A DNA stretch of 64,000 nt, taken from Octopus bimaculoides. Lineage: Eukaryota. Made by a program: the position numbers and the translations under genes. Location: contig NC_068984.1 of the NCBI RefSeq assembly GCF_001194135.2, positions 11,453,815-11,517,814 on the forward strand. Direction: 5' to 3'. The notes beneath the pieces were generated by a model that was not told the origin of the DNA, did not search any database, and worked only from the letters and a program-made list of their open reading frames with translations. Numbering within the stretch: position 1 is the first letter of the stretch; every line of letters begins with the position of its first letter. Shown piece by piece: positions 55 through 62,793 of the stretch.

Positions 55-1083
55 TTAATCATCAATGTACTTTCCTTGATTATCTATGACTTCCTTTCAT
101 CTATTTACAAGCTTTTTAATCCCATCAATGTAAAACTCTTTTGGTTTCAAAGCAAAGAACTCTGAAATGTCAGTTTCAACCTCCTCCTGGCTTGCGAAAA
201 TTATGTCCCCCAAATGATTCTGTAAACTACCAAACAAATGGTAGTCTGAAGGAGCAAGGTCAGGAGAATAAGGTGGGTGAGGAACTTTTTCCCAGCCAGG
301 CTCTTCGATCTTCTGTGATGTGATCTTTGCAGTGTATGGTCGCGCATTGTCCTGATGAAACATCACTCCTTTTCAATTCACTAAAGCGGGTTTTTTTTTT
401 TTCAAAGCTTGGTTTAAACGCTCTAATTGCTGACAGTAGACTTGAGCATTGATTGTTGCATTAGGTGGTAACAATTCAAAGTGAATTACTCCTTTCCAAT
501 CCCACCAGATAAAGAGAAGAACCTTTTTCCCATGAAGTTCCCTTCTAAGTTGTGGTTGAGCTTTTTCCCTTTTATCAAGCCATTGTTTACGATGTTTAAC
601 ATTTCGATAGAAGATCCATTTTTTTTCACCAGTCACAAGTCTATCCAAAAAGGGTGAAATGAGTTTGCAAGAATGGAGAGAAGAGCAGATGTCAACTCGG
701 GATTTGTGGTTGCTTTCAGACAATTCACGAGGCACCCATTTTCCAAGTTTAGGAACATTTCCAAGTTGTTGAAGATGACGATGAACAGTTGTATGGTTCG
801 AACTAAGCTTTATTGCCAATTCTTCAAATGATAATGCAAGAGTTTCTTCAAGTAATGCCTCAAGGAGCTTATCATCAAACTCAACTGGATGTCCTGTTCG
901 ATCTTCATCTTCAAGGCTGAAATCTCCACTTCTGAATATTGCAAACCATCTTCTGCAAGTCCTTTCATTCAAGCATTCTTTCCCATAAACTGAGTGTATA
1001 TTTCGAGTCGCTTCGGCTGCAGAGTTTCGTTTTTTATACTCATAAAGCATTATGTGCCTTAAATGATCTTTGGATACTTCCAT
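55..1083 (-). mobile_element. Mariner (Tc1/mariner, DD34D) transposase, near full length but inactivated
   Basis: ORFs 373-1104 and 97-366 share one frame, split by a TGA at 373-375 (LVN*KGVMFHQDNARP). A second TGA at 97-99 is followed by KEVIDNQGKYIDD* to 55. Motifs: HTH (RNIHSVYG..RRWF), WVPREL, HQDNARP, HPPYSPDLAPSDY. The first catalytic motif reads TGEKKW instead of TGDEKW. TIRs not recognised. Confidence 0.93.
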
Positions 1084-1420
1084 GTTAGAAAGGGTTTTAA
1101 TCAAAGAAATTTTAATTCTATTATTCTGTAAAATAATATTTAATTAGTTTAAATATACACAAATGCATAAAAATAATTTTTAATTCCATTAGACATTGTA
1201 NNNNNNNNNNNNNNNNNNNNNNNNNNNNNNNNNNNNNNNNNNNNNNNNNNNNNNNNNNNNNNNNNNNNNNNNNNNNNNNNNNNNNNNNNNNNNNNNNNNN
1301 NNNNNNNNNNNNNNNNNNNNNNNNNNNNNNNNNNNNNNNNNNNNNNNNNNNNNNNNNNNNNNNNNNNNNNNNNNNNNNNNNNNNNNNNNNNNNNNNNNNN
1401 NNNNNNNNNNNNNNNNNNNN

Positions 1421-24479: not shown

Positions 24480-24790
24480 ATCGTTTTAGAACGCCGCGCA
24501 TTTATTCTTGTCAAAATTATTGCTCTTTTTGAGAAGTTTTATTTCTTTTCTCTATTTATTTTGACAAATATTTGATAATATTTTGTCGTTGGTGACAGAA
24601 ATAATAATTTATGGCTGGAAGATGAAAGATTGACATCATAAAGCTGCGCATGTCAAGTAGACATCAACGCCATATTGCAAATGGTGAAGTCGGCTGCGTG
24701 GGAGCTGCTTACTTGTGTCGTGTAGAGAGAGAGAGAGTGAGAGAGAGAGATTTCAGTATCGTTATTAAAGGAAACAAAATTAAGAAGAAA
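24480..24790 (+). promoter_or_regulatory. ARGLU1 promoter / 5' UTR region
   Basis: CpG-retaining. NRF1-like TGCGCATG at 24645-24652, YY1-like CGCCATATT at 24668-24676, (GA)n tract before the ATG. The motif roles are inferred. Confidence 0.5.
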
Positions 24791-24975
24791 ATGGGACGAT
24801 CAAGAAGTCGTAGTCGATCAACAAGCAGGACGAGACATCGTGCAAAACACAAGAAAAGGCGCACTAGGTCACGTTCACGGTCTGCGTCCAGAGATCGCAT
24901 CCATAGTCTCAGTCGGCATCACAGTAGCAGCAGAGTCCAACGGTCTCGGTCGAAAGATAGAAAACGAGTTGCCAG
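24791..24975 (+). CDS. ARGLU1: ARGLU1 exon 1 (RS-rich N-terminus)
   Basis: MGRSRSRSRSTSRTRHRAKHKKRRTRSRSRS...KDRKRVA, donor AG|gttcgt, phase 2 matches the next exon. Confidence 0.9.
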
Positions 24976-27293
24976 GTTCGTTGCTCTTCCTTTCTTCTCC
25001 TCCTCTGCATCAGATTTATCTATGCTTCTATCTATGTGTGCTTTGTTCTACATAATTTCGCAAGCTAGCCTGCTTAGCTTACCCTAAACAGCCATTCTGT
25101 GGAGATAAACCACATGGGAATGGAATTATTTTCACAAATTGCTTCTTACAAATGTATTTGTTTCGATTTACTTTTAAAATCTTTCTTTCCCGTCAAAAGT
25201 ATATTCCTAATAATCTCTCAAACTTTTGCCATCATCCTGTATATTTTAAATATTAAATCAGTGTTTCATTAAGGTGAATGATGGTTGTATATTGAGAATC
25301 TAAAAATATAAATAGATCTCATCAATGACTGCATCAAGTTCAAATTAGAAAATTCCCTCCAAATTCTTTCCCTCGTTATTCGACCCTAAACAATGAGTGG
25401 CATTCTAACCTAGTTCGACTTGCAAGAAATAACTGTCAAATCCTTCCTCAGATCGCACCTCACCATCTTCAAACAGTAGAAGCACAAACTGGATAATGAA
25501 GTTCTTGGAGATAGCATTAAAAAAACGAAAAAAGTCAGTGTGTTCACGACTGGAATGGTTAAGCTTATGAAGAAGACCTATGAGCAAAAGTACATTCCAA
25601 CCACGAGCGTCCCACCTTATAATATTTTATAACAGATACAAGCGAGACAGCTTCTATGTGGTAGCTTGCAGGGCGAGAAACAGCAGCCAAACCTTTCACA
25701 TAACTTATCGTATTAAATAAAGTACAGTGAACAAAATAGTCTCTTAAGATACTCAGAAAAAATGGGATGGCCACGATTGGAATATATTTTGCTTATAAGT
25801 CGCTATTCAATCGGGGGGGGGGTGATATTGTAGCGATACACACCACACGCACACACACATATTTGGTTCCTTGTTAAAACTTAATTAGCTAATTATTTTG
25901 TATTGGAAATCTATTTTTCATAATGTCGAATTAATATTTGGCTTTTTAGAATCTCTTGTTCTGATGTCTGTTTATCATTTGCAACTGTTGTTCTTTGTGT
26001 GTTGTCGATTGATCGATATATCGATATATTAAAACAGTACATCCTCAAGTGTATAACATTTCTCAATTACATTAACACAGTACTGATGTTCTTCAAGATA
26101 AAGAGAATCATTGATTTCTTGGAATGGGGTCAGTAAAGCCATTAAGATCAAGGAGTTTTAATGGATTAGGCTTCGAAGATCTTTGTGTAGAACAAACTAA
26201 GACTGAAGGTGGTGGAGCTATCTTAGATTTTATTATTTTAAATTTTTACCTCAGCTTTGTCCATTGTCTCATTGAATAAAGCTAGAGTTCGTCATTAGAG
26301 AATATCTATTATCTGTGTACATATATGCATGTGTGTGTACGAAATGCATTTTCGGTTTAACCCCCTCCCCCAGTATTTCTTGTTATCCCCTCTCTTCTCT
26401 GTATGATTCCTGAAGTTAAATTCTATACGGTAGTTGTTCCTTAGCCCTAGGCATGCTCTTATCTAGCAAAATTTTAATCAAAGACACTTCATCTGTGACC
26501 ATTCGTCTTTTAGTATGTCCATGTCATTTCATTTTGTTAGGGTGGGGTATGAATTGGTGATGATTTGACTCATGTTTTTACCAGGTCAAACGACAATGTA
26601 AAACCCATTTTGACGGTGGTAACGTCGAACCAGTGATGTGTGCAACATCTTAGTCCGTGTTGTGTGTACACGTAGACATAAGTACACAGTGTTAGTGTGT
26701 TAATGTGTGAACTGAGGAGACACCAGTTATTGTTCTCCTTCAAACGATATGCAGGGACATTCATTTCGTACAAAACACAAAGCCCAATTTTGTTAATTCG
26801 ACTGTGTCAGTCATGCCCTTCCTTACAACGTTAGTGACATTGATCCGTCACGTTTCCTACATTAATACGTAAAAATTATTTGTGCATTTATGAACACTAC
26901 GCACTCAAAACAGACGCTAAATAATTACACACAAACGCACTCGTGTATAATTCGAGAAAATTGGATGGTATAATTATACGAGTGTACAAAGAGAATAAAA
27001 TTGTAACTTTTTCTTTTTTTTTTTTTGCAGATAAAAATAAAAGTTAGGCACATCGTATTCGACATAGCAATTTAGTCGAGTAAACACGGTAGTTATATTT
27101 GATCTGCGATCGATCGCATTTTTGATTATGGATCTTCAAATCGTCTGTAGCCTTAAGACTATTCTAGAGAGTCTGTCAATTTTTTATTCCCAAGTTGTAT
27201 GTAAATACGAAGTGTATTTACTTTTTCTTTGAAGAATTAGCCCATATTTATGTCTTCGTCAATTTATCTGCTACATCAGCTTCAATTTATCTA

Positions 27294-27670
27294 GGCGCAG
27301 GCGTGGCTGTTTGGTTAAGAAGTCTTGCTTCCCAACTCTGGTTTTGGCGTTAACCCGATCCGACCAAAGCCGTACGAGTGGATTTGGTATACGGAAACTG
27401 AAAGAAGCCCGCCTTGTATTTATATGTGTCTGCTTGTGTGTATCCATATCCAGATATCACGTGATAGTTGTAAATGAACATCATTGTCATACAAGTGACA
27501 TTGTTTCCATTCTGTGAAAAATATGTCAAGTAATGGGAAAATATTACGGCGATCGCCATTACTATCCTGCTTGGAAACAGGTGAAAGGCATTCGACAATA
27601 GAAAATCTGCCTCAGTAAATTCCGTCTGACCCATGCAAGCATGAAAAAGTGGACGTTAAATGATGATGAT
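27294..27670 (+). mobile_element. SINE with tRNA-like head and (GAT)n tail (composite family)
   Basis: Head ggcgcaggcgtggctgtttggttaagaag is shared with the 15110 family. The tail gacccatgcaagcatgaaaaagtggacgttaaatgatgatgat is shared with the RTE-type family. Confidence 0.75.
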
Positions 27671-34159: not shown

Positions 34160-37079
34160 AGATTGAAAAATCACTACCAGGTCTTGCTTGTATTAATCAT
34201 TAAATTTTCAACTGTGTATGGCCCTATATACAGTTTAGTCACAAAGCTCAACAGTATTATATTTGACTTAACTTCCTATGCTAGTAAACTGCTTTTTTAT
34301 CCTATGGATTAATCCTTTTGATACCAACCTGCCCAAAACAGCCCTTGGCTTTATGATACAAACTTTTTTTTGCAGGGATCTAAAATAAGGCCTTCCACCA
34401 AACTTTCATGTAAAATTATTCTCAAAACAACAGCTTAATAATGACAAAGTAATTTGAGTAAATTCTCCATTATGTTAAAAATTAATTAAAAGAAAGGCAG
34501 TATATTTCAACAGAAATATAACAAAATTTTAAGTCTCAAATATAAACTTGCACCAATTTCTATTTTTAGCCTTGTTAAGACAAAATTTTTATAATAACCA
34601 AGAAATATTTCAGTCTCTCACAGTTGTTTACTTCTTTAAGTTATAAATGTTTCACATTGAAATATTGCATCTCTTGACATCTTAAACTCCATTTACTTGA
34701 TCGTGAATTCTACTATCCATAAATACTTATGTGCTATAATTATTTCTGTCCCTTTATCTTACTATTGATTCTTTAATGAATTTTGCCCCTTTGAGTTTTC
34801 AGCCTGGACTGCTATTCAAACTTACCCTACTCTGTCAGTTAATATTGTCTTGTGCCAGACATTAACGAATCCCTATAAAATTCATATCTTTTTGTGATAT
34901 GGCTTTTTTCTTTTATGATACAACAAAACAAAAAGTGAGAGAGGGAGAAATTTTATTGATTATAAATATGTCATATAATATATTTAATTTCATACATATG
35001 TGGCATTAATTAATCAATTGCAAAAATGTGTTTTAAAATAGAAATTCAAAAGTATGTCAGTATTCTTGAAACCCAGTACAAATGTATGATTTAAAAATTG
35101 GGTTTTTACTGTTAGTAAAAGAAAAATAATTGATAATGCCATCAATAAAAGGTATCTTTTACCTGTTTCCGTCATTGGACATATCAGCTCCAATTGTTTT
35201 ATTTTTTAAAGTTTGGTACTTACTGTACTAGTATCTTTTGCGGAACTGCTAAGTTATAGGAGTGTAAACAAGCCATTGCTGTTGTCAAGCAATGGCTGGG
35301 AAACAGACAACACACACACACACTGCATGGTTCCTTGGGCAAGTATCTTCAGCTATAGCCTCAGGCTGGCCAAAGCTTTGTGAGTGGATCTGGTAGACAC
35401 AAGCTGAAAGTAGCCTGTTTTTGTATCTGTGTGTGTGTGTGTGTTTGTCACTCGCCACTGTTTGACAACTGGTGAAATGCTGGGATTGATTTGTATGACT
35501 AATATTCTTCAAAGTGGTACTCCAGCATGGCTGCAGTCTAATGACTGGAACAAGCAAAAAATAAAAGACACACACATGCACCAAGCTTCCATAGCTTCTG
35601 TCAACTAAATCCACCCACAAGGTATTAGTCAGCCCTGAACTATAGTAGAAGGATACTTGCCCTAGGTGCTGCATAGTGGGACTGAACCTGAAACCAGAGT
35701 TGCCAAGCAAGTTTCCTAACCACATAAGCATGCCTGAACCTGTAACCATAATTGTATGAAAATCATTTGTCAGGTACCATTTTTTGTTTAAAAAGATATT
35801 TTTCTTAATTACAGAGTAGAGATAGTTTGACGTATTTCAGTAAACTTCTTGCATGTGAAGTGTATTAGTTGCATTGTAACAAACTATATTGCATTAGATC
35901 TAAAATTGATTTGTAAGAGATGTGGAAGGATTAAAGGTGGACTTATGATGACAGTATAGAGTCACTTGATGTATAACTGACAGATGTTTCAGTATCCTGT
36001 AAATGCAACTACATTTGAAGAGGGAGAGTTGGCAATAAGCATAAGGTGTGTAGTTAAAAAGCTGCTGTTGTTTTTCATAACAAAGCCATCCTATCTTTCT
36101 CTTCACAGGAAAGAGAGTATATGGTAACACTGTTAGATTTAATTGTAATGTTAGACATGCTCAGTTGTCTCAGGAGATCTAAATTGATAGTTGTTTAACT
36201 GTTAACATATAAATAAAAGGTAAACTTATTTACATTAGTAAGGAGTAAGATGAATGATAACAAATGTTTCTGCTGATATTCAGCCTCAAGAGAGTTGTCT
36301 AACTTGCCAGAAATAGCAGTAAAATCCCCTTCAGTTAACACTCTACCATTTTCAAAAGGGAAGATCATATACCTAGGTAGTCCTAGGTATAATGTATCTG
36401 AAAATTGCTCAAAATATAAATCCCATTTATATTTTGTTCCCTGTTTCTTGCGAGTATGCCCTGGCACTTTGCCACCGTCTCTCTCCTGCTCTCTCGCTCT
36501 CTTCCATTCTCTCTCTCCCTCTGAGTGGGTAACCATGTATCTCTACAACTTACCTGTTTCTGTCCTCATACTTGATCTCTCTCTCTCTCTCTCTCTCCGG
36601 GTAACCATGTATCTTCTCTGCAGTAAAACACCTGTTTCTTTCTCTCTGTCAAACTTTAACCTTTCATCATCTGGCACAAGATCACCTCCTCCAATGCCCT
36701 TTCAAAGGGTCTTTTTTTGCAGGTTACTTAGTGACTCTGCCAGTGCTGGTGCCATGTAAAAAGCATCCAGTCCACACTGTAAAGTGGTTGGCATTTGGAA
36801 GGGCATCCAGCTATAAAAACCATGCCAAAACTGACCTTACCTGTGCTGGTGCCATGTAAAAAGTACCCAGTACATTGCTGGCTGGTTGGTGTTAGGAAGG
36901 GCATCCAGCCATAGAAACCATGCCAGACCAGACACTGAAGCCTGGTGCGGTATTCTGCCTAGCCAGCTCTTGTCAAACCATTCAACCCATGCCAGCACGG
37001 AAAGTGAATGTTATCATCCGAAGCACCTTTAAATCAGAAGTCTGTCGGACTAGCATGTAGGAAATGAGTTAGTAAAAAA

Positions 37080-37964: not shown

Positions 37965-38075
37965 GCGGCGATCATATTCTTCTAGTAGTTCAAGTAGTGA
38001 TGAAGATCTTATTATTCGTGCTAAACGTCGGGAAGAGGAGGAAAAGAAAGCTGAATTGGAAAAACAGAGAATTTT
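37965..38075 (+). CDS. ARGLU1: ARGLU1 exon 2
   Basis: ttacag|G CGG CGA... encodes RRSYSSSSSSDEDLIIRAKRREEEEKKAELEKQRI, donor TT|gtaagt. REEEEKKAE is an ARGLU1 hallmark. Confidence 0.92.
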
Positions 38076-39027
38076 GTAAGTTACTTTCCTTTTGATTGAT
38101 GTTTTGAATTTTCTTCACCTTTTCTATTTGCTGCAGAATCAATTTGTAAATTTTCTATGCATGTAAAAAGATACATTTCATTGATGAAATGACATCTAAG
38201 CTTGATTCATTAACCATTGATAATAGATATGTTGCAAATATAGACTTAGTCTGTTTTAAAATAGTCACAGTTCCTTAGAGGTTCTGTTAGTATTAGAAGT
38301 AGTAGTATTGTAGCAAACATTTATATATGTCCTATTTTAATTTGTTAAATTAACTGAGCAATAATCTTGTTGGGCTTTTAGTATAATTTAAAATGCAGTA
38401 TTGCCTCTCATATTGTGTTGGTTCATATTCCTGTAATTTCACACCTGTCTGTATTAGATAAATCACTAACACCAGTGCATACTCTTTATTCTTTTAGAAT
38501 AATTTATGCCTGCCAAGCTAATGCAGTTGGTGTGTCTTAGTGATATTCATATAATCTTAATATCAACAATGCTGGCAGAGCGAGTGTGAAAAAGAACTTA
38601 GTACAGTTTATTGTAACATCAGTGGAGCTGCCATCTCCTTTCTGTTAACAGATGTTTTGTCTTTTTTGTCCATGCTGGTATGGGTTAAATAGGTTCAAAA
38701 TGCAGTATGCCACAGTTTAAAGCGTGTGTTTTTTTTCAATATGATACAAAGTTCTCAAGTCTGCCCTGATTTCATTTTCTCTGGTCTACATCTGCTGCAC
38801 ACTGTGCAAACAAAACCCTGATATTTTAAACAGTGTTTCTTACTACACTATATTGCTGGATTTGTGTAACAGTGCATAAACATGTTTATTGTGGATAGCA
38901 GGACTAAAGAAACTCTTGATGTGACTTGGAGCCTTCCTCACCACAAGAATAAATACAAAAGAGCATATTGTAAAAATATGGCCAAGTTCTTGTTATTACA
39001 TAGTAAACAGGAGCAGTGTATTAAGGT

Positions 39028-44491: not shown

Positions 44492-44717
44492 AAAACAAAA
44501 GGAACTGGAAGAAAAATTGATAGAAGAGGAAGTAGCTAGGCGTGTAGAAGAGCTTGTGGCTAAAAGAGTTAATGAAGAGCTTGAGAAACGTAAAGATGAA
44601 ATTGAAGCTGAGGTGATGCGACGGGTAGAAGAAGCAAAACGAATAATGGAGAAACAAATGCTTGAAGAATTAGAAAGACAACGCCAAGCTGAACTTGAAG
44701 CACAACGTCAAAAGGAG
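44492..44717 (+). CDS. ARGLU1: ARGLU1 exon 3 (Glu-rich coiled coil)
   Basis: cattag|A AAA CAA... encodes [75 protein letters not shown], donor gtattg. 226 nt. Confidence 0.97.
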
Positions 44718-45022
44718 GTATTGCAAAGTTTCAGCTTTTATTTTTCTTTGCTGTTTTCCCCTCAGTTTGGTTTACTTTTCATATTTTACTCTCCAGTTCC
44801 CTAAAGAAAAACATCAGTAACTATTGTATTGATTTTTTTTTTTGTCTTATAAATTCTAAAATTGATGATCACTTTAGGCTACATTTTGTTTTAAAATGTC
44901 TTGTCAAAGTCCTGAAGCTATGTGTGTTTTGGTAATCTTGTAAATTGCTTTTCACTTAAAATTGTTATGGCTTTGGTCCCTTCAAAATTTTCTTTTTACT
45001 ATTATATATCTACTTAAGTAAA

Positions 45023-45150
<128 letters not shown>

Positions 45151-46453
45151 AAATTAAAATTAGGTCAGCTATATTGCAGTATTTTCATAATTAATAGTTA
45201 ATTAGTTTCCCAAAGAAAGAAAGGCTTATTATTTAATTCTATATTGAAAAATGCCAAAACCATAAGTGATTAGGACTTGGTAACACATTTACTAAATTTA
45301 TGTAGGTATTTTAAATTGGGAAGGAAAAAAAAAGTTGTTTTTTTTTTTATTTATTTTTTATTACAAGGAAGAAATTAAGAGTTCTTCTATTTCTTTCTCT
45401 CTACTTCCTATGATAATTCATTTTTAGGTTGATATAGTTAAAAAGCTTTATTCTGAAAAAAAAAAAAATCATCTCTATCCTGAATGTGAACTGTTTTATT
45501 GGACATTTCTGTTCATAACTCTCTTGTTACCGTATTTCTAATAAAATACACTGCCTGTCATTTTTTTTGATTAATTTGAAGGATTTAGTAAAATATAAGT
45601 AACATTTTTATAACTTATATGTTCTACATAAAACTACATGGAGGGTTCAATTTTAAATATAAGCAACTTAAAAATGAACAGTTTTATATTAGAGACAGTT
45701 TCAGGCAATTTGGTGTCCAAAGAGTTGAACTTAAAGAAGGAATAAAAGTACTTCCTTGTTGATAGGATTGTGTAACAGTTCTTAACGCACACACATGCAA
45801 TTTGTATTTTGATCTTTTCTAAAAGGATTCTCTCAGAACTTTAAAACACAATGTAGGAATATTTTTGAAAGAAACAGTAAACATTACAAAGCAAATAGTA
45901 TTGCCATTATTAAATTGCATTTTGATTTCAAATTCACAAACCATAAACTTTTTTTCAATAGTGGAAAGAGTTTGATGTACATAATTTAAAAGAAAGAAAT
46001 TTTCTTTTAAAATAAAATCTCATCTCTTTTCACATGTATCTTATTTGCACACAGTTTTTGATTGTTCACAATTCTTGTATTATAGATGGTTTTTATCTTT
46101 TTTTTTCTCTCCCACTTCTTCAATCTGTAAAAGTTCAGTAATAGTATTGATAATTATTGACCTGTATAATTTAAAATGTCATTTATGAACAATAAATGGC
46201 TCTGGCTGACAAATTAAATGTTGGCTCTATAATTCAATGCTAGCCTAGTTGTGTAAAGTTGTAAATGGAATGAAAAATGTGAGGGGAAATAGGCAAGGAA
46301 TCTTTTAACTGGCAGTTTATCCCCTTCCTTTCTATAACATTAAATTTGTCTTAAAATATTTAATATCAATGTTGGTTTTTCTTTTCAATTCCTTCCAATA
46401 AGATGGTTGCAGTGTTCTTTTCCTCAAGGCTGTCTCAAAGATTTCAATACATG

Positions 46454-46506
<53 letters not shown>

Positions 46507-46511
46507 GTGTG

Positions 46512-46543
<32 letters not shown>

Positions 46544-48563
46544 TATATAATATCCTGGTTCCCTTTTTCTATTCAGAATGACATTTTGTTAGTTAGTTTC
46601 AAGTTTTTGATTTCCAAATTGTTTTTATATATTCTCACCCCTTTTAATGGAATTTGAAACAACACCCATTACAACTGATTACATATTTTCCTTTTTGTGG
46701 TTTTTGCTGATTTGGTCAAAATTTATCAACATTATTTTAGCAGTGAATATGAAAATAATGCCCAGAGCCCAGATTCATATCCTATTCAAATTGTTTCAAT
46801 TTTGAAATAATATTCCCACTTTTACTGTCCTTTTTTTTTTTCATTGCAAACATTTTTGTTAGCTTTTAACAGTCTTGTTCTTCGTAAACCTCAAGCATTT
46901 TATTGATAATTTCATTATAATTTTTAGTAGGCTCAGTTAACGATCTTGTCGTATTTTCTCTCACGTTTTTCAAACCAAAGTCTGTTATCTAAATTAACTT
47001 ATGTTAATGTCTTAATTATTTGTATTTGTTAGTTTTCTGGTTACTTCACTTGTGAAACTGGTTATGTACACCTTCTGGTGTTGAAGCTCTTTCTCTCTAT
47101 TTTGTATGAATGGTTGATGTAAGTATGCAAGTGGCTCTTTTTTTTTTTTTTTTTTAGTTCACAGCAAAATTAGAATCTGCATCAGTAAAGACCATTTAAT
47201 CTTTTAAGTTTCATTTTGTTTGTAAATTTAATTGAGGATAGTCTCTCTCTTTAGTTTGAATGGCTGATGTATTACACTACTTTTGCTTCACATTAGTCTT
47301 CTATCATTGGTAGCTCTATTCTGACATAATTGAGTGCTACTCTGTGAAATGAGGAATATTTGTTTTAATAATGGTTGCAATGATACAGATTCTATCTTCT
47401 TCCCAAGTAGAAAATCTTGTTCAAGAGACAGCTTTTTCCTTAAAGAAATTGTAGAAATTCCTTAAGGCTTAAATTAACGAGTTTCAATTTCTTTTTATTT
47501 TAATTTGGTAGGAAACTTTATAAACTGGAATTGTTTGATTTGTTGCAATACATATGTTGGTTTCTTAAAATTTGCTTCCTCTTTGGATTGCAGAACTCAA
47601 CTAAACTCAAGAGCTTTGCTTAACAATTTGAAGTTTCTGATAAATGATAGTTTCTGAATGGTGTCATAGGTGCAATGTCATGGTACTGTTTTTATGTCTT
47701 GAATCCATCTGCTTTTGCATTGGCTTTTTTTCTCCTCATTTTTTCATTTATTGGACTTTTGGCTGTTGAACTGTACATCCTTACCAATATTCATACAATG
47801 TGCTAAACAGTTATATTGTTGCTTTCTTTTTTTATTTTATGAAGAATAAGTTACATGCTGGAAAATATAAAAGAGCATGGAAACTGTTAATGTATTTGAA
47901 CTTCAGTTTTTATTCTGAAAGGATTAATATAGATCCTAAAATTAACAATTGAAATTTTCCATTCTCGTTTACATAACTCAAAAATTGAGTACATTTCCAG
48001 CTGAAAATGTTAGGTTTCCAATTTGTGAATGATTTCTTTAAGCAGAAAGCTGTTTCTTGACATCTCTTTGTAAGTATTGTTATTGATTGAGCAATTCTGC
48101 TCTCATGTGTACATGCTATATTTTGGCCACACATATATCGGCATAAGTTAACTGGAACAATCATTAGGTTCCTAATGCCGTCAGACCTAATGAGAACATT
48201 TTTTTACAGTATTCAATGATGCATTTCCAGTAAAATAAACCATACCATTGGATTCCTGCTGAAAAGATATAAAAGATTGGATATTCACACAGCTGAGGAA
48301 GTATGTAAAGTTTACACAGCCATAATTCCCTTCTGTCCTTGCTCCCTTAAATTGTTGTTTGCCCATTCTGATCTAAATGGTGCGTTCATCTCTTGTACTT
48401 CAGGGTTTAATATTACTCTATTTAGCTTTGAATTTTCTTGACGTTATTAATAACATCTTTTCACAGATTGTCCATTCCATTGCATTGCAAGTTCTTGGCA
48501 CTGGTACTTAGAATATACTTTAAAATACATGGAATTTCTTCATCCGATTTTCGTTCACTCTCT

Positions 48564-48566
<3 letters not shown>

Positions 48567-48612
<46 letters not shown>
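48567..48612. repeat. Poly-T run of about 46 nt
   Basis: Direct reading. Confidence 0.95.
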
Positions 48613-48615
<3 letters not shown>

Positions 48616-50623
48616 CTTCAGAATAAGTTTTGGTGTGCAATTCAAAAATCTACATGTTAAGGGCTAAAACAATTTCCAAGATGGTTATTTAATGAATGTA
48701 GTTTTGACCATTTTTCAAACAGTGTTAGGAAATTCTCTGCAAATTTCAGCTTGTCAGCCAATTTCTATTCTATTATTGTTTGTTGAGTGTTGCTTCTCTC
48801 TTTTTAGTTTCTTTTTGCTCCTGTCTTTTAATTTTATATTTACATTGTTTCTTTAATTTCCCATCAAACTAATGATAAAAGAAAATGAAGGAATTGTTTT
48901 GTATAGAGATTCATATTTAGACAAAATCTCTCTTAATAGTGTGTTAGTATTTTTTAGTAACAGGAAACCTGATTTAAGAGTGTGCAGATTGCTTCCTTCT
49001 TACACTAACCTGGGAATGTCTGTGTTTTGATATATTGGTTTATAACAAAGGCAATAATCATATGCTTGCCTGATTTATCATTTAGTATCACTAAAAGCAA
49101 CTTCTATTGTAGCCATTACCAGTTACGACATCTATTTATCAGTATAATTTCTTTTATAACAAATGTTAATTATTGAGAGGAGAATAAAAGTAAAGCACCA
49201 AGTCTTACAATATTAGGAATTCCCTTTTTTTAGAAATCAGTGGTAGTTGTAGTAGTTGTAGGAAAGTTTTGTTAATGCCGCTTCTGACACTTTCACTTTA
49301 GAAGACCTAAAGGGATTTTGTTTTGGGTCTTTGGCCAAATCCTTTTCTTCTGTACTATGTATCGACTGCTGAAACAGTTAATACAAGCGTCGTCAATTTT
49401 TCACTGGCCACCTCCTTATAATTACTTGCCCTTTATTACCTGCTGCTGCTGCTACTACCACTGACTGGTGGACAGTTTATTTGGTGTCTAGTTGGGGATT
49501 TTAATGGCTTTGTTTAAATATGAGACAACTGGCTGCTGCTGTGAAGTAAACAGTTTGAAGAGGAAGCATTCCTGGAAGGATATAATCGTGTCATGTGCTA
49601 CAGATGTGTACCTACCTACTCTTGGGTATGTAGAAAGATACTTTTCTATCAATGACGTCACATTATCTGTCAATTCTCCGTGCAATTTGTTTAAACTATT
49701 CTTGGAGTGTAGTAGAAATTACTGCCCACAATGCAATATGTTGGGCTAATCGATTCCTTATCTCTAGGAATATGCATAAAAGTTCAACCAAAATGCTAAT
49801 TCCATACTTATTTTTTTAAAAATTCATGTTTATTATAAAATGTACATTTTTTTTATGATTAATTTCAAATTCTTTAAAGTCCAACTGGTATGTATCTTTT
49901 TATTTTGACCTTTTTTTCCCTCATGACTCTAACATATAAAAAGAAAATATTTATAATAATGTTGAGGTTGAATTGCTATTAGATCTCATGCTGATTCTTG
50001 TGAAAAGGTTTGTAACATTGCTGCTTGTGTTTTTCTTAATTTCTTTCTCAATCTTTTTTTTTTTACTTCTCCCTNNNNNNNNNNNNNNNNNNNNNNNNNN
50101 NNNNNNNNNNNNNNNNNNNNNNNNNNNNNNNNNNNNNNNNAGCTCCTTTGTTTTTTTTCATCAAGAAACATATTTATAAATGAAAAGATGATCGACTCGG
50201 TCATCTGTATTTTACCAAACTATTTTTTTTTCTAGAGTGTTGTTTGAATGTTTGTCTAATGTGATGTGTAGCCTTTTGTAAATTTTTAAAAATAACATCA
50301 AAAAACAAAATTATTATCCCTTGCCTTTCTGTGCTGACAACAACAACAGTAATTTGAAACACCTTTGTTCTCACCCAGCTGTGCTGATGGCCACTGGTGG
50401 TGGTGGTGGTGGCGGCGGTGGTGGGGGGTATAGTGGTTGTGTAACTGCCGCTGGTACTACTGCTGTCGCTGCTGCTACTGCTACTCCTGCTGCTCTACGT
50501 TGAACTCATCCACGGCCTGTTACTTATTGTGTCATAGCTTACAGCTGATTATTTTATTCCTCGTGTATTATACAGTTTGTTTCCTATGCACCTTCGTATG
50601 AACATGGTTATCTGTCTTTGTAG

Positions 50624-50707
50624 GAAGAGGAGCGGAAAAAGCGAGAGGATCTTGAGCGCATAATGGAAGAAAACAATAAAAAAATTGAAGAAGCTCAAAG
50701 AAAATTG
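50624..50707 (+). CDS. ARGLU1: ARGLU1 exon 4
   Basis: ttgtag|GAA GAG GAG... encodes EEERKKREDLERIMEENNKKIEEAQRKL, donor gtaagt. 84 nt. Confidence 0.97.
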
Positions 50708-52603: not shown

Positions 52604-52880
52604 CGTCGTCGTTTAACATCCGCTTTCCATGCTAGCATGGGTTGGACGATTTGACTGAGGACTGGTGAAACCAGATGGCTACACCAGGCTCCAATCTGAT
52701 TTGGCAGAGTTTCTACAGCTGGATGCCCTTCCTAACGCCAACCACTCAGAGAGTGTAGTGGGTGCTTTTACGTGTCACCCGCACGAAGGCCAGTCAGGCG
52801 GTACTGGCAACGGCCACGCTCAAAATGGTGCATTTCATGTGCCACCCACACAAGAGCCAGTCCAGGGGCACTGGCAACGA
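52604..52880 (-). mobile_element. Young RTE-type/SINE 3' end
   Basis: Reverse complement nearly identical to 18040-18312. Confidence 0.85.
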
Positions 52881-53013
52881 TCTCACTCGAAAAAAAAAAA
52901 ATAGAGCAAACCATATGATAATTAATGATAATGTAAGAGTATTGCTTAAGGATATTTCTCATTGAAATATGCAGTTTTTTAATTTTATTTCATTTTTTTT
53001 CCTCTTTATTCAG

Positions 53014-53172
53014 GCTGAAGAGCAGTTGAAGCTGGTTGAAGAACAGCGAAAAATTTTAGAAGAGAAACAGAGAATGGAAGAGGAGGAAAGGAAACGGGTG
53101 AAACAAGAACAAGACAGAATTTTAAATAAGAAAAATGCTCGACCAAAATTATCATTCAGTTTGGGAAAATGA
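53014..53172 (+). CDS. ARGLU1: ARGLU1 terminal coding exon
   Basis: ttcag|GCT GAA... encodes AEEQLKLVEEQRKILEEKQRMEEEERKRVKQEQDRILNKKNARPKLSFSLGK*. Contains the conserved RPKLSFSL terminus. Confidence 0.97.
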   Translation, partial: AEEQLKLVEEQRKILEEKQRMEEEERKRVKQEQDRILNKKNARPKLSFSLGK

Positions 53173-55365
53173 AAGACTAACGACTGGTGTAATGTAAGAA
53201 AATCTAAAATTAGAAAGTTATTTTGTGTAGGCAATGTTGACAATAAGATACAAATTAAGGATTTGGTTATCTTTATGGAGAGCTGCTAAAGTAAAAGATT
53301 TAAAAGAGATCTGAAATAAAATTGCAGACTATACTGCAAGTTCTATTTACAGATGTCTTGGAAAAGGGAAGAAATTTTGATTGTGTTTACTGCATTGCAT
53401 TATTCATGAACTTTTTTTAAACCATAAGAACTTAATAAGGTTTTTAAAATCTGGTCTTCCTTAGAAAAAGATTCCCTTTTTCTCTTGATTATTTTTCAAG
53501 AGAAGGATTCATAATCTTATCAGGGATTAGTCGTCATGGATTAATTAAAAGAAACTTTTTTTTTTTTTATCCCTAACACCAGTTGAAAAAAAAAAAAAAG
53601 CCACAATTAGTTTAGGTTACTGGTCTGTTTTCTTTGTTGAAAGATTAAAGAACATGCATACATTTGCGTCCGTATTATGTGAAATATCAATTTCTCTTGG
53701 TCATTGATGTTTTACGAATTAGGAATGTTTTTCTGACTAATTTAAATGCCTTGTCAGAAAATTCGTTATGTAGTGAATTTGATGAGTATGTCATTGTTGA
53801 CGGTTGGTTGTTACTTTGAACAGGGGTGATTGCATTTTAATGTATTTTATTTCACTGTTGCAAATCTACTGTCTAGTTGGCACTGTAACTCCACTTGCTT
53901 TGTGGCTTTAACAACAACAATATATTCTCTTGTTATAAGGAATATAGTTGTTTACAACTAGTTCAGCTAAAAATACTTGGCTGAACTCTGTGAACAATAT
54001 CACACCAATAAGATAGGTGATGTCGCTAAAATCATCTAATGTTGAATGATGCATTGTTATAGAATAAACATTACAGCGAAATGCTGTTTTGTTTGATCAG
54101 AGTTAAAGATGCAGGGTTGGCTGGACTTTTTATTGTTAAATGGTATCGCTTGACTTGTTGCTGCTTTATAACTGCAGCCATTTCTCTCACTCCTCCATTA
54201 TAATTACTGCTCCAATTGAACAAAATGTAAAATTTCAAAATCTCTAGAAAAACGGCCATTTCTTATATTCTTTTGAATATAGATTATTGATACCTTCTTC
54301 ATTGTAAATTGTTCCTGTACATTAGTTAAACGGTACAGAACCTTTTTTTTTTTCTTAAATGTACATTTCTTGTACTTCTGGATCTCATCACCATCTTTCC
54401 TTCCCCCTACTCCCCAAACATTTTGTACAGTTTTTACATCTGTAGCAAAACTGGTTTCATTCATACATTTTGCCACTTCTCTCTCTCTCTCTCTTTCAAA
54501 AGCCCAGATGTTGTACCTTGCAGTGTTCAAATGTTGGCTTATTAAATCAGTTGAATGCTACCCAAGCTTGATCTACATTTGTACATTTTGATACTTTCAT
54601 AAATGATCTCCTTTTCATAGGAAATGCTTATTGCTTATAAGCATTTGAAAGATCTTAATTTTAATGGATATCTGATGGAAATAGATGCTGGTTCCCAAAA
54701 ATCTCTTCTATTCCTGTGCAATGAGCCATTTAATGAACAACTGGCACTGACTAATATCTGTTAGTATATACTGAACATAACGTTCTCAGGTCTACTGCTG
54801 GACCCAGCTGTATATTTCTATGCCGAGCCAAACCAAGACTTACAACATTCTGCCTACTTCAACTTTAGTGCTCTTATTTCTGAAGGTTTGGCAGTAGCTT
54901 TGAAAATTGCCTGTTTGACTACTATGTAGTCCAACTTCCCTTTGTCTTTTGTATGTACATTTTTATTTTTAAACTTGATCATTTGTCCGTTCATGCTTAA
55001 CATTATACATATAGTTAGCTTCTTTTGATACTGTCCGTTTCAGTACATTTTGATATTTAAGGACATCTGAAATTTATCTAGTTTATAACATTTTTACATT
55101 TAATTTTTCAAGAAAACAATTATAAAATAGTGATGCTTTACAAAAAGAGTGAAGTCTTGAGTCTTGGTTGTAAAATTTTTGAGCAGGTTTTTTTTTTTTT
55201 TCTTTTTTTCATCATACCATCTTCTGTAAATACACATGAAATCATTAAAGCATTTAAATGAATGTAGTTTTGCTTTTTCATTGCTTTTAAACTTATTTAA
55301 TTTGATCTTGTTTGAAAATAAAAATCAAAACATTTAATTGCAATGAAACTGTAATATAATAAAAT
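53173..55365 (+). other. Probable ARGLU1 3' UTR (~2.2 kb, repeat-free)
   Basis: No SINEs until about 55400. AATAAA at about 55317 and 55358. Confidence 0.45.
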
Positions 55366-60284: not shown

Positions 60285-61215
60285 CTGGAAAGATATAAAT
60301 ATTGATAAGAAATTTAATCAGATATAAAAGCACTTCATCATTGAGCTAATTACACAGTCATATCTTTTCTTTTATCTTTCAATTGTTGCAGTCACTGGAT
60401 AGTGGCCATGCTGGGGCATCACCTTGAAGGGTTTAGCCGAACAAATTGACGCCAGTGCTTATTTTCTGAGTCTGATACTTGTTTTATCGGTCCCTTATAC
60501 TGAGTCTCTAAGTCACAGGGACTTAGTGAAACCAAATGCAGTTGTCAAGCAGTGGAGGGGGGACACAAAAGACACACCCATACGACAGGCTTCAATACAC
60601 ACACAAATGCCGGTGGTATGTAAAAGCATCCATTACACTCTCAGAGTGGTTGACTTTAGGAAAGGCATCCAGCCATAGAAACCACGCCAAAACAGGCTGG
60701 AGCCTGGTGCAGCCTTCCAGCTTGCCAGCCCTGGTCAAACCATCTGACCCAAACCAGCATGGACAATGAATGTTAAATGACAATGATGATGATGATAAAT
60801 CTACCGACAAAGCTTTTGTTGGCCTGGGGCTATAATAATAATAATAATGAAATTATTGTTTAGGTGCACTATAACTCATCAAAGGTGCATGTACAGTACA
60901 TAGAATTGTATACAAATGTCAGGAAAGCGAACAGTGTATGAGTCATGATACACATGAGTGCATGCGTATGGGGCAGGGGATATCAGGTGTAGTATTGGCG
61001 AATTTCAGGAAGCATGAAGGTGACATTTGTCCAGGTGTTGCACAGTGGGACTGAACCTGAAATTACATGGTTGAAAAGTGAGCTTCTTAACCATGCAGCT
61101 AGGCTTGCATCCTATTCAACTTTATCGCACAAAATAGACTTTGCAAATGCCAAACATAATAAGGTTTAATGAAAGTAACTCAACATCAAATCATGATTTT
61201 GCAAAATGTGCTCAC

Positions 61216-61318
61216 TTTTAGCATAGCCATCAAATGGATAGATCTTTCTGTTGTAAATATCCAAGATATAGACATCATTGTCATCAGCTTCAAGTACATC
61301 TCTCTGGTATCCATTGCC
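61216..61318 (-). CDS. HDAC11: HDAC11 exon
   Basis: Encodes GNGYQRDVLEADDNDVYILDIYNRKIYPFDGYAK, donor gtgagc. Confidence 0.94.
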
Positions 61319-61437
61319 CTGGAAAATAGGAGTAACATTTTAAGGAGAGGTTTTGATGGGAAGAAAACATATGTCTTGTGAGAGAGAGAAATCCATTGAA
61401 AGTGGGGAAAAGGGGAGAAAGAAGAAGTCATTTTTAC

Positions 61438-61617
61438 CTGATGAGCATCAAGGTCTACAATTAATATTTTTCTAATCTTATGTCTGTCTCTCATGAATTT
61501 CATTGTAAGTGTAATATCAGCATAAGCACAAAATCCACCCCCTTTCTTGGCTGAACAGTGATGGAATCCACCACCAAGATTTATTGACCAGCCACGCTTA
61601 AGAGCAAGTTCACCAGC
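61438..61617 (-). CDS. HDAC11: HDAC11 exon with the GGGFHH and DLDAHQ active-site motifs
   Basis: Encodes AGELALKRGWSINLGGGFHHCSAKKGGGFCAYADITLTMKFMRDRHKIRKILIVDLDAHQ. Confidence 0.97.
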
Positions 61618-62793
61618 CTGCAACAAGAGAACAGAGTCATTAGAAATTAAGACAATGATATATGTTAAAAGGAAAATGATAAAAAAATTTCTCACTGTAG
61701 TACAAGGCTAGACATTTGTAAGAGAGGGGAAGAGTCTATTAAATCGACTACATCATAAATACAAAGTTTATTGATTGTAGAGAAATAGAAGACAACTTTG
61801 GTAGGATCTGACTCAGAATGTGGAGCACTGAATTATTCTGCCACTCCATGTAATAATTATAGTGATATTGGTTTCAGATTTTGGCACAAAGTCAGCAATT
61901 TGGGGCAGAGGGGTAAGTTGATTATATCAACCCCAGGGCTCAACTGGTGCTTATTTTATCAACCTCAAACGGACAAAAGGCGAAATTGATCCCAGTGGTA
62001 TTTGAACTCAGAACATGAAGTGAGAAGAAATGCCACTAAGCATTCTGTCCAGTATGTTTAATGATCTGCCAACCCATTGCTTCATAATGATATTAATAAT
62101 ACATTAAAGTAATGAAAAACAGAAGGGTCTATAATTGATACTCTTGCCTAGATCATATGCAAGAAATTATCAAAAAAATGTAATGACCCAAATGGGAAAT
62201 CATACAAAGAGAATTAGACAACACTGCATCGTTTAAACTGAACAACTTGTTACAGTTAGAATATACATATATCTACAACCATGCAAACTAGTTACATCTA
62301 TTGGGATGTGTATGTGTGTGTGTAATTTATTTAGTGATCCAGTGGTTTGTTACTCTGGAGATTCCACAGCATGCCACCACTTCCTCAAGTCAAAGTGGGT
62401 CGTGTGTGTGCGTGCACGTTTGTGTACATAAACACTACTAAATTATCAAGAAATATTAAATACAAACATTTATTAAAATGCTGTCATTGAAAACAACCAA
62501 TTTACGGTTTTTCAATGAAGGAGACTCTACATGATCATTTGATCTGTTAGAAATAGCAGCCAAATCTCCCTCAAACTACATGTTAGCATCCTGTTAAGAG
62601 GCAGACACATTAGATAATGTAGTCCTAGATACTCAATGCCTGAGAGAAATATGGGACTGTCATCAGTAGAATCATAGGTCTGCTTGATCACTACTCACCT
62701 GGCACTAAGCAACAGCTCAAATATATGATTGTGCTAAGAAAAATATAAGAAAACCACAAATAAATTATTACTAAAGACTGAAAAGGTCTTTCT

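Follow-up and report, generated by a model that had tools for sequence, protein, structure and literature searches.

The stretch of Octopus bimaculoides DNA analyzed here (contig NC_068984.1, positions 11,453,815 to 11,517,814; 64,000 nucleotides (nt), hereafter the window) carries the ARGLU1 gene on its + strand. This study was concerned with a candidate pseudo-exon in the third intron of that gene. Five ARGLU1 exons were placed, exon 3 by translation and tblastn. Exon 1 begins with the ATG at 24791 and extends to 24975, with the ATG and the phase-2 join to exon 2 counted by hand, and exon 2 lies at about 37965-38076. Exon 3 (44492-44717, 226 nt) ends at the donor GAG/GTATTG, where the slash marks the splice point, exon 4 occupies 50624-50707 (84 nt) and exon 5 occupies 53014-53173, all on the + strand. 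Intron 3 (44718-50623, 5,906 nt) is homologous to intron 2 of vertebrate ARGLU1, the intron that is retained or detained in those species. An assembly gap of 66 N at 50075-50140 falls inside intron 3, between the island that holds the candidate and exon 4. The distance from the island to exon 4 is therefore uncertain, and some sequence may be missing.

In vertebrate ARGLU1 a nuclear retained intron occurs together with a poison exon, which lies in an ultraconserved block of 500 nt; several competing 5' splice sites are found downstream, and there is feedback on the level of ARGLU1 protein (PMC5389617). An earlier note on this DNA had proposed that the octopus intron contains a used cassette or poison exon, as a mollusc counterpart of this splicing switch. 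Its background and its choice of intron are correct, since they agree with PMC5389617. Its coordinates for the 226-nt and 84-nt exons around a 5.9-kb intron were also confirmed, and the candidate lies between these two coding exons as the vertebrate element does.

The island is less AT-rich than the rest of the intron, with a G+C content of 42% at 49300-49600 against about 29% for intron 3, a value second only to that of 50300-50600. The largest form of the candidate pseudo-exon spans 49492-49625 (134 nt, + strand), and shorter forms start at 49554 (72 nt) and 49561 (65 nt). The common donor, TGG/GTATGT at 49625/49626, coincides with the octamer GGTATGTA (49625-49632, + strand), which agrees with the consensus 5' splice site for U1 at 7 of 8 positions and thus represents a U1-competent internal 5' splice site. 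A crude generic weight matrix was run over all GTs (356) and AGs (240) of intron 3, and this donor ranked 7th of the 356, above the real donor of exon 3. A second copy of the octamer (CTG/GTATGT, 49887-49894, + strand) lies 262 nt downstream of the first and is possibly a second decoy donor.

The three forms differ in their outcomes. The 72-nt form (49554-49625) is in frame and stop-free, with the translation FEEEAFLEGYNRVMCYRCVPTYSW. The 134-nt form shifts the frame and leads to a TAA at 50661-50663 in exon 4, and the 65-nt form reaches the same TAA. The 65-nt form begins at AAG/AGGAAGC, a position equivalent to the vertebrate acceptor when compared by eye with the cassette of the star-nosed mole. 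Near the start of the shorter forms is the purine-rich, enhancer-like GAAGAGGAAGC (49557-49567, + strand), which contains a 10-mer common to the start of the vertebrate cassette, a likeness at chance level. A branch-point-like CACTGAC, read from the sequence, is found at 49460-49466, 26 nt upstream of the acceptor ending at 49491 and inside a predicted RNA stem (stem 1, below). The particulars in the earlier note were accurate here: the donor, the AG acceptors ending at 49491 and 49553, both frame outcomes, the CTG runs (49441-49452 and 49532-49541), the quoted core (49546-49584) and the lower AT content of the island.

Retention of the homologous intron was observed in gastropods. Contig L013, from a sequencing run of RNA from the freshwater snail Hua sp. 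3 (PMC12222893), is a complete ARGLU1 mRNA that retains one intron of 2,183 nt (L013:544-2726). Exons 1-3 are joined in this contig, the homologous intron is present whole from GAG/GTAAAC to ...TCTACAG, and exons 4-5 are joined and followed by the 3' untranslated region. Partial contigs from H. wujiangensis (L001, 1-727) and Hua sp. 1 (L014, 1-334) overlap the 3' part of the same isoform. The sequencing runs for Hua are SRR32834839, SRR32833658 and SRR32835171. L013 is a mollusc occurrence of the vertebrate retained-intron isoform, and selective retention of the ARGLU1 intron between the 226-nt and 84-nt exons is not confined to vertebrates. No report of its selective retention in molluscs was found in the literature searched.

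Three further observations concern the same junction. The gene model P0002 (Timema cristinae) has a 33-residue insertion exactly at the junction of the exon 3 and exon 4 homologues, and P0003 (Hyalella azteca) has a longer, intron-like insertion there. In L012, a JGI contig of RNA or DNA origin, exons 2-3 are joined and are followed by at least 583 nt of intron. These may hint at alternative use of the exon 3-4 intron in arthropods, or they may be annotation artefacts.

Conserved blocks with tandem donors are present in this intron in other lineages. Three gastropod lineages and a fourth, mollusc-like lineage have in common an intronic element with tandem U1-type donors and the core GGTATGTAAAAC. 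In Hua and in two genomic, gastropod-like loci (L002 and L019), the best-conserved part of the intron lies 770-1060 nt upstream of exon 4. This block (L013:1895-2030, L002:12700-12830, L019:10340-10460) holds two to three tandem 5' splice-site-like motifs and reads cag/C.GGAG...GGAAGG...GCAGTAACG/GTATGTAAAAC...GAG/GTA.AGTA...TTTTTTGACACATGCTC. A short AG...GT unit ends at GCAGTAACG/GTATGTAAAAC, and the tandem donors are arranged as GCA/GTAACG/GTATGTAAAAC ... GAG/GTA. L002 and L019 are 87% identical over 121 nt of the block, and the exons of Hua L013 and L002 are 69-81% identical. Farther upstream in the intron, a 21-nt perfect match, ATGCCGGCAGTTGTCCCCCCT, is found at L013:1314 and L002:11977.

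The fourth lineage (L003/L015) has GAAGAGGAGG...TTG/GTATGTAAAACGTTAGAG/GTAAC at 460 nt upstream of its exon 4, with the same 12-mer as the gastropods. L018, the closest relative by protein, has TTTG/GTATGTAGATTTTTTAAAG/GTAAAT at 484 nt upstream of its exon 4. Its donor context, TTTG/GTATGTAGA, compares with TTGG/GTATGTAGA in the window (TTGG/GTATGTAGAAAG in fuller form), and the counterpart of the octamer site in L018 is TTTGGTATGTAGA. Another invertebrate clade (L006, L008, L009 and L020) has a different block built on the same logic, ...GCTG/GTAATTA...GG/GTGAGAAATGCTTATAATTATTTTGTC. It was located at L006:2056-2100, L008:2265-2309, L009:2687-2730 and L020:7702-7750, where it takes the form GCTG/GTAATTA...GG/GTGAGA..TGCT.TAATTATTTTGTC. 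The putative units differ in length, and so in frame, across lineages: 46, 39 (L002, in frame), 38, 67 and, in the window, 72, 65 or 134 nt, with 58 nt in vertebrates.

Two further features of these loci were noted. L009 contains a 10-mer, ATTGGTGAGA, identical to the downstream 5' splice site SS6 of the vertebrate element, ttg/GTgaga. Just past exon 4 of L018 (12620-12940), a unit of exon sequence (the 3' half of exon 4), donor and flanking intron is repeated in tandem about four times at a period near 80 nt, and the repeats form a row of pseudo-donors.

Of these conserved sequences, the window has only the octamer in common with its distant relatives. Six copies of GGTATGTA were counted in 21.7 kb of intron 3 (sense strand, six lineages), against 0.93 expected from the remainder of the same loci (Poisson P = 4e-4), and eight control octamers occur 0-1 times each in the same introns. 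The window holds two of the six occurrences, at 49625 and 49887.

We tentatively propose that the stretch 49554-49634 works as a decoy or poison pseudo-exon and favours retention of intron 3. The octamer at 49625, perhaps its twin at 49887, and the upstream purine-rich GAAGAGGAAGC would draw the U1 small nuclear ribonucleoprotein and exon-definition factors. Because the acceptors are weak, these decoy complexes would be mostly unproductive, and removal of the 5.9-kb intron would be slow. The retained-intron RNA would carry a stop 28 codons into intron 3. If the pseudo-exon were included now and then, the mRNA would be frameshifted (134 or 65 nt) or would encode 24 additional residues (72 nt). 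ARGLU1 protein would shift the balance to the unproductive outcomes, a negative feedback like that of vertebrates. In the fly, the homologue of ARGLU1 binds U1-70K (PMC5389617), which suggests a possible route by which ARGLU1 could strengthen the decoy and close the feedback loop. Retention, rather than nonsense-mediated decay (NMD), may be the conserved output, because the unit lengths differ in frame and the stop is near the last junction. The position of the intron, the motifs, the gastropod retention and the conserved donor-bearing block of gastropods are direct observations. From these we infer a function for the site in the window, retention in this species, an action of ARGLU1 upon it and a possible gating by the stems described below.

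Several results count against this proposal. First, the acceptors ending at 49491 and 49553 rank only 93rd and 161st of the 240 AGs in the weight matrix. Secondly, the TAA at 50661-50663 lies 44 nt before the exon 4/5 junction at 50707, a distance that must exceed 50-55 nt under the vertebrate rule for NMD. This rule may not hold in invertebrates. Third, the island does not stand out when compared with the blocks of other molluscs. Its pairwise ranks against the Hua, L002 and L003 blocks (7-631 of 2476 tiles) are unexceptional, and the island was rejected as a homologue of the L003 intron (rank 150-350 of 1232 tiles). With a profile built from the mollusc block on sequence alone, the island was likewise not selected: it scored 3.8 bits (E = 0.49 in the intron), less than two other intronic sites. 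Fourth, the 12-mer occurs 12 times in the window with at most two mismatches, so that a match to it alone means little, and the window is without the closely spaced second donor present in other lineages. Lastly, when the two lineages that defined the motif are left out, GGTATGTA occurs 4 times against about 0.75 expected, and the enrichment is taken as moderate support, because the test was designed after the data had been seen.

Searches for closer relatives were negative. A protein search with the cassette included and an exact reading-frame look-up returned no close relatives or transcripts of the species, and a degenerate DNA pattern in metagenomes returned no close relatives. The scan of related loci reached 85% identity at best, and synteny with HDAC11 reached 72-81% at best. 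The exons of L018 are only 75-78% identical to the window in DNA, and for this reason the introns of the nearest ARGLU1 loci are unalignable. The earlier note had looked to alignment with other lineages for support; comparison with the distant loci gave the enriched octamer and no significant pairwise or profile match at the island. Its broader idea, a mollusc counterpart of the switch, gains from the retention in Hua, the gastropod donor block and this enrichment. Its used cassette or poison exon keeps the strong donor and the frames and is weakened by the poor acceptors, by a stop so near the junction, by the lack of a significant match to the mollusc blocks and by the absence of detectable homology to the vertebrate element.

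That last point was assessed with the locus of the star-nosed mole (L004), in which the homologous exons lie at 70193-70418 (226 nt) and 72681-72764 (84 nt). The alternative exon of the mole was placed via UniProt isoforms that include it (P0096 and P0089) and spans 72198-72255 (58 nt, acceptor ttttaaAG, donor ACA/GTAAAT). The sequence ...CTAACAGTACAAATCATTTTAAAG/AGGAAGCTGG in the mole compares with ...GTAAACAGTTTGAAG AGGAAGCATTCCTGG in the window. The sole ungapped match to the vertebrate cassette is the 10-mer AAGAGGAAGC with a few flanking bases (blastn-short E=3), and matches to the vertebrate element that are as long or longer are scattered elsewhere in intron 3. In gapped alignments of the vertebrate cassette, the island ranked 3-41 of 1240 window tiles, varying with the scoring. 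On these values the island was rejected as a homologue of the vertebrate ultraconserved element or its cassette. The earlier note had suggested a likeness of its core to the vertebrate cassette; the 10-mer does exist, at the level of chance.

A short motif near the start of the retained intron was also recorded. CATGGCA is found at +35 to +42 in the mole (L004:70453-70459) and in two invertebrate lineages, L020 (6087-6093) and L021 (8248-8254). The gastropods L013, L002 and L019 have GCTGGCA at the offset where the others have CATGGCA. The window, L018 and L015 are without CATGGCA and have instead the common intron start GTAWTG.AAA.TT.

The closest competitor to a decoy pseudo-exon, and one that is nearly as likely, is that the island is chance intronic sequence. 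It would then be ordinary intron with a G+C content raised by trinucleotide microsatellites, and any regulatory elements would lie elsewhere. An intron of 5.9 kb will as a rule offer a convincing-looking GT and several AGs, and intron 3 has other donors that score equally well or better, besides the weakness of the candidate acceptors. Neither the vertebrate element nor the mollusc blocks resemble the island significantly, and it matches no protein or RNA family. Part of its G+C excess consists of CTG and GGT runs, and its ratio of observed to expected CpG equals the window background. However, chance alone does not readily explain two exact copies of an octamer for which other lineages show conservation or enrichment in this intron, or a donor context nearly identical in L018. 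The octamer is also preceded by a GAAGAGGA-type motif, as in L003/L015, and retention of the same intron in Hua makes some decoy element likely.

A less probable alternative is that RNA structure, and not the exon, is what matters. Two repeat-built stems are predicted in the intron (all arms on the + strand). Stem 1 pairs a GGT/AGT-rich 5' arm (49237-49265) with a CTG/CTA-rich 3' arm (49436-49464), which overlaps the CACTGAC at 49460-49466; the two arms make up inverted repeat I1. Hairpin 2 (50396-50497) pairs a (GGT)n arm with a (GCT/ACT)n arm and ends 126 nt upstream of the exon 4 acceptor. The fold z-scores are -3.56 for stem 1 (duplex -39.4 kcal/mol) and -3.66 for hairpin 2 (local duplex -47.3 kcal/mol), and no shuffled sequence folds as well. 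Pairing between the 3' arm of stem 1 and the 5' arm of hairpin 2 is predicted at -47.7 kcal/mol, about as stable as the local pairings, and could loop out the candidate exon. Interchangeable arms that fold locally or across about 930 nt would then tune the exon 4 acceptor and retention; alternatively, the hairpins may be neutral and derived from microsatellites.

The distribution of the repeats lends this structural explanation some weight. CTG/GCT-type runs are confined to the sites of stem 1 and hairpin 2 within the 64 kb, the trinucleotide-repeat arms (CTG/GGT) supply part of the G+C excess of the island, and both modules carry a collinear 17-mer beside the 5' arm. However, low folding energies come easily to low-complexity repeats, and long-range pairing in vivo is speculative. 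Alignment of the island with the exon 4 region is within the range of other intron segments, with only the repeat arms and the 17-mer collinear. That the island is a decayed copy of exon 4 plus the sequence before it was rejected, as 27 of 500 shuffles reached the local alignment score.

Two other identities are very improbable. An intronic enhancer or alternative promoter could be marked by a cAMP response element (CRE) and a Staf/ZNF143-like site. The CRE palindrome TGACGTCA at 49653-49660 (+ strand) lies 27 nt after the donor and is the sole full CRE in the 64 kb (0.28 expected). CCCACAATGCA at 49725-49735, which resembles the Staf/ZNF143 core, lies 65 nt past the CRE and has two matches in the window against 0.28 expected. 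These motifs were chosen after the sequence was read, no downstream first-exon signal was found, and the CpG ratio of the island (0.3-0.4, against about 1 at the real promoter, 24500-24900) led us to reject a CpG-island promoter there.

A genuine coding cassette exon of 72 nt, which would add 24 residues to the coiled-coil region of ARGLU1, is equally hard to credit: the form is in frame and stop-free, and the stick insect and amphipod gene models have in-frame insertions at the same junction, but its acceptor (aaacag, rank 161 of 240) is without a pyrimidine tract, its peptide is Cys/Tyr-rich in a Glu/Arg/Lys-rich protein and has no homologue in any match, and frames of 24 codons without a stop often arise by chance. 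Protein-coding identity in general was rejected, since the frames of both strands gave no match in a search of 5.8 billion proteins. The window holds no second copy of the island, and on this ground it was rejected as a repeat or transposon copy; as a known RNA gene it was rejected in that there is no Rfam family or tRNA match.

The remainder of the window contains several other features. A CpG island covers the start of ARGLU1 (24500-24900), with an observed to expected ratio of about 1 against a window mean of 0.29, and a second CpG-rich stretch lies in intron 1 (26500-27400, ratio 1.0-1.6). An HDAC11-like exon at 61186-61695 (- strand) is arranged tail-to-tail with ARGLU1, and Pfam PF00850 is found in its homologues. 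A reading frame of 243 residues at 373-1104 (- strand) resembles, by eye, a fragment of a mariner/Tc1-type transposase. The peptide ..LDALPN.. is common to reading frames at 36728-36998 (- strand) and 52665-52965 (+ strand), which suggests from the sequence that the same interspersed repeat is present at both places, in one case immediately 5' of exon 5.

If 49554-49634 does act as a decoy, a wider history can be considered, which we find rather doubtful at present. Self-regulation of ARGLU1 via a U1-decoy pseudo-exon would be ancient, dating at least to the protostome-deuterostome ancestor, with its sequence almost wholly turned over. Only short motifs would be recognisable: tandem 5' splice sites, a purine-rich exon start and, in some lineages, CATGGCA at about +35. 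In the octopus genome the element would also be gated by competing repeat stems. The ARGLU1 element of vertebrates is a textbook case of ultraconservation, and elements of that class are not known outside vertebrates. If the same feedback does act through the same intron and unrelated sequence in molluscs, the mechanism predates the ultraconserved sequence by far. The question of why vertebrates froze their version would then become testable, and molluscs would provide an invertebrate model for intron retention driven by decoy exons.

The candidate can be compared with four known systems. The closest is the element in intron 2 of vertebrate ARGLU1, which is in the same gene and the same intron, with the same flanking exon sizes. 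Both have a short pseudo-exon with a purine-rich AGGAAGC start behind a poor pyrimidine tract, and both have more than one 5' splice-site-like motif in the region. About 1 kb separates the candidate from the next exon, and 425 nt separate the mole cassette from the exon that follows it. Retention of one intron in an otherwise spliced mRNA is a further likeness, seen here in gastropods. The vertebrate element differs in that its exon (58 nt in the mole) sits in a 500-nt block that is 95% conserved, whereas the likeness of the window amounts to a chance-level 10-mer. Inclusion of the poison exon and its response to ARGLU1 are published for vertebrates, whereas the window locus is known from sequence alone.

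The second system is that of the decoy exons in SF3B1, OGT and other genes (PMC6097662, PMC7373989). These also involve an intron of more than 1 kb with an internal exon-like unit, which is rarely included and whose splice sites, according to the proposed model, hold the flanking ones in unproductive pairings. They have reporter and antisense support, whereas the window offers sequence features and motif enrichment. The third is the group of poison exons in serine/arginine-rich (SR) and other splicing factors, which resemble the candidate in that a splicing-related gene contains an exon that brings a premature stop. In the window, however, no more than 44 nt separate the stop from the last junction, and one choice of acceptor is in frame and stop-free. 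Lastly, paired regions in BRD2 and BRD3 loop out exons (PMC10789245). The candidate exon likewise lies between complementary arms, with local hairpins as the competing structures, but in the window the arms are trinucleotide repeats and their action is predicted only.

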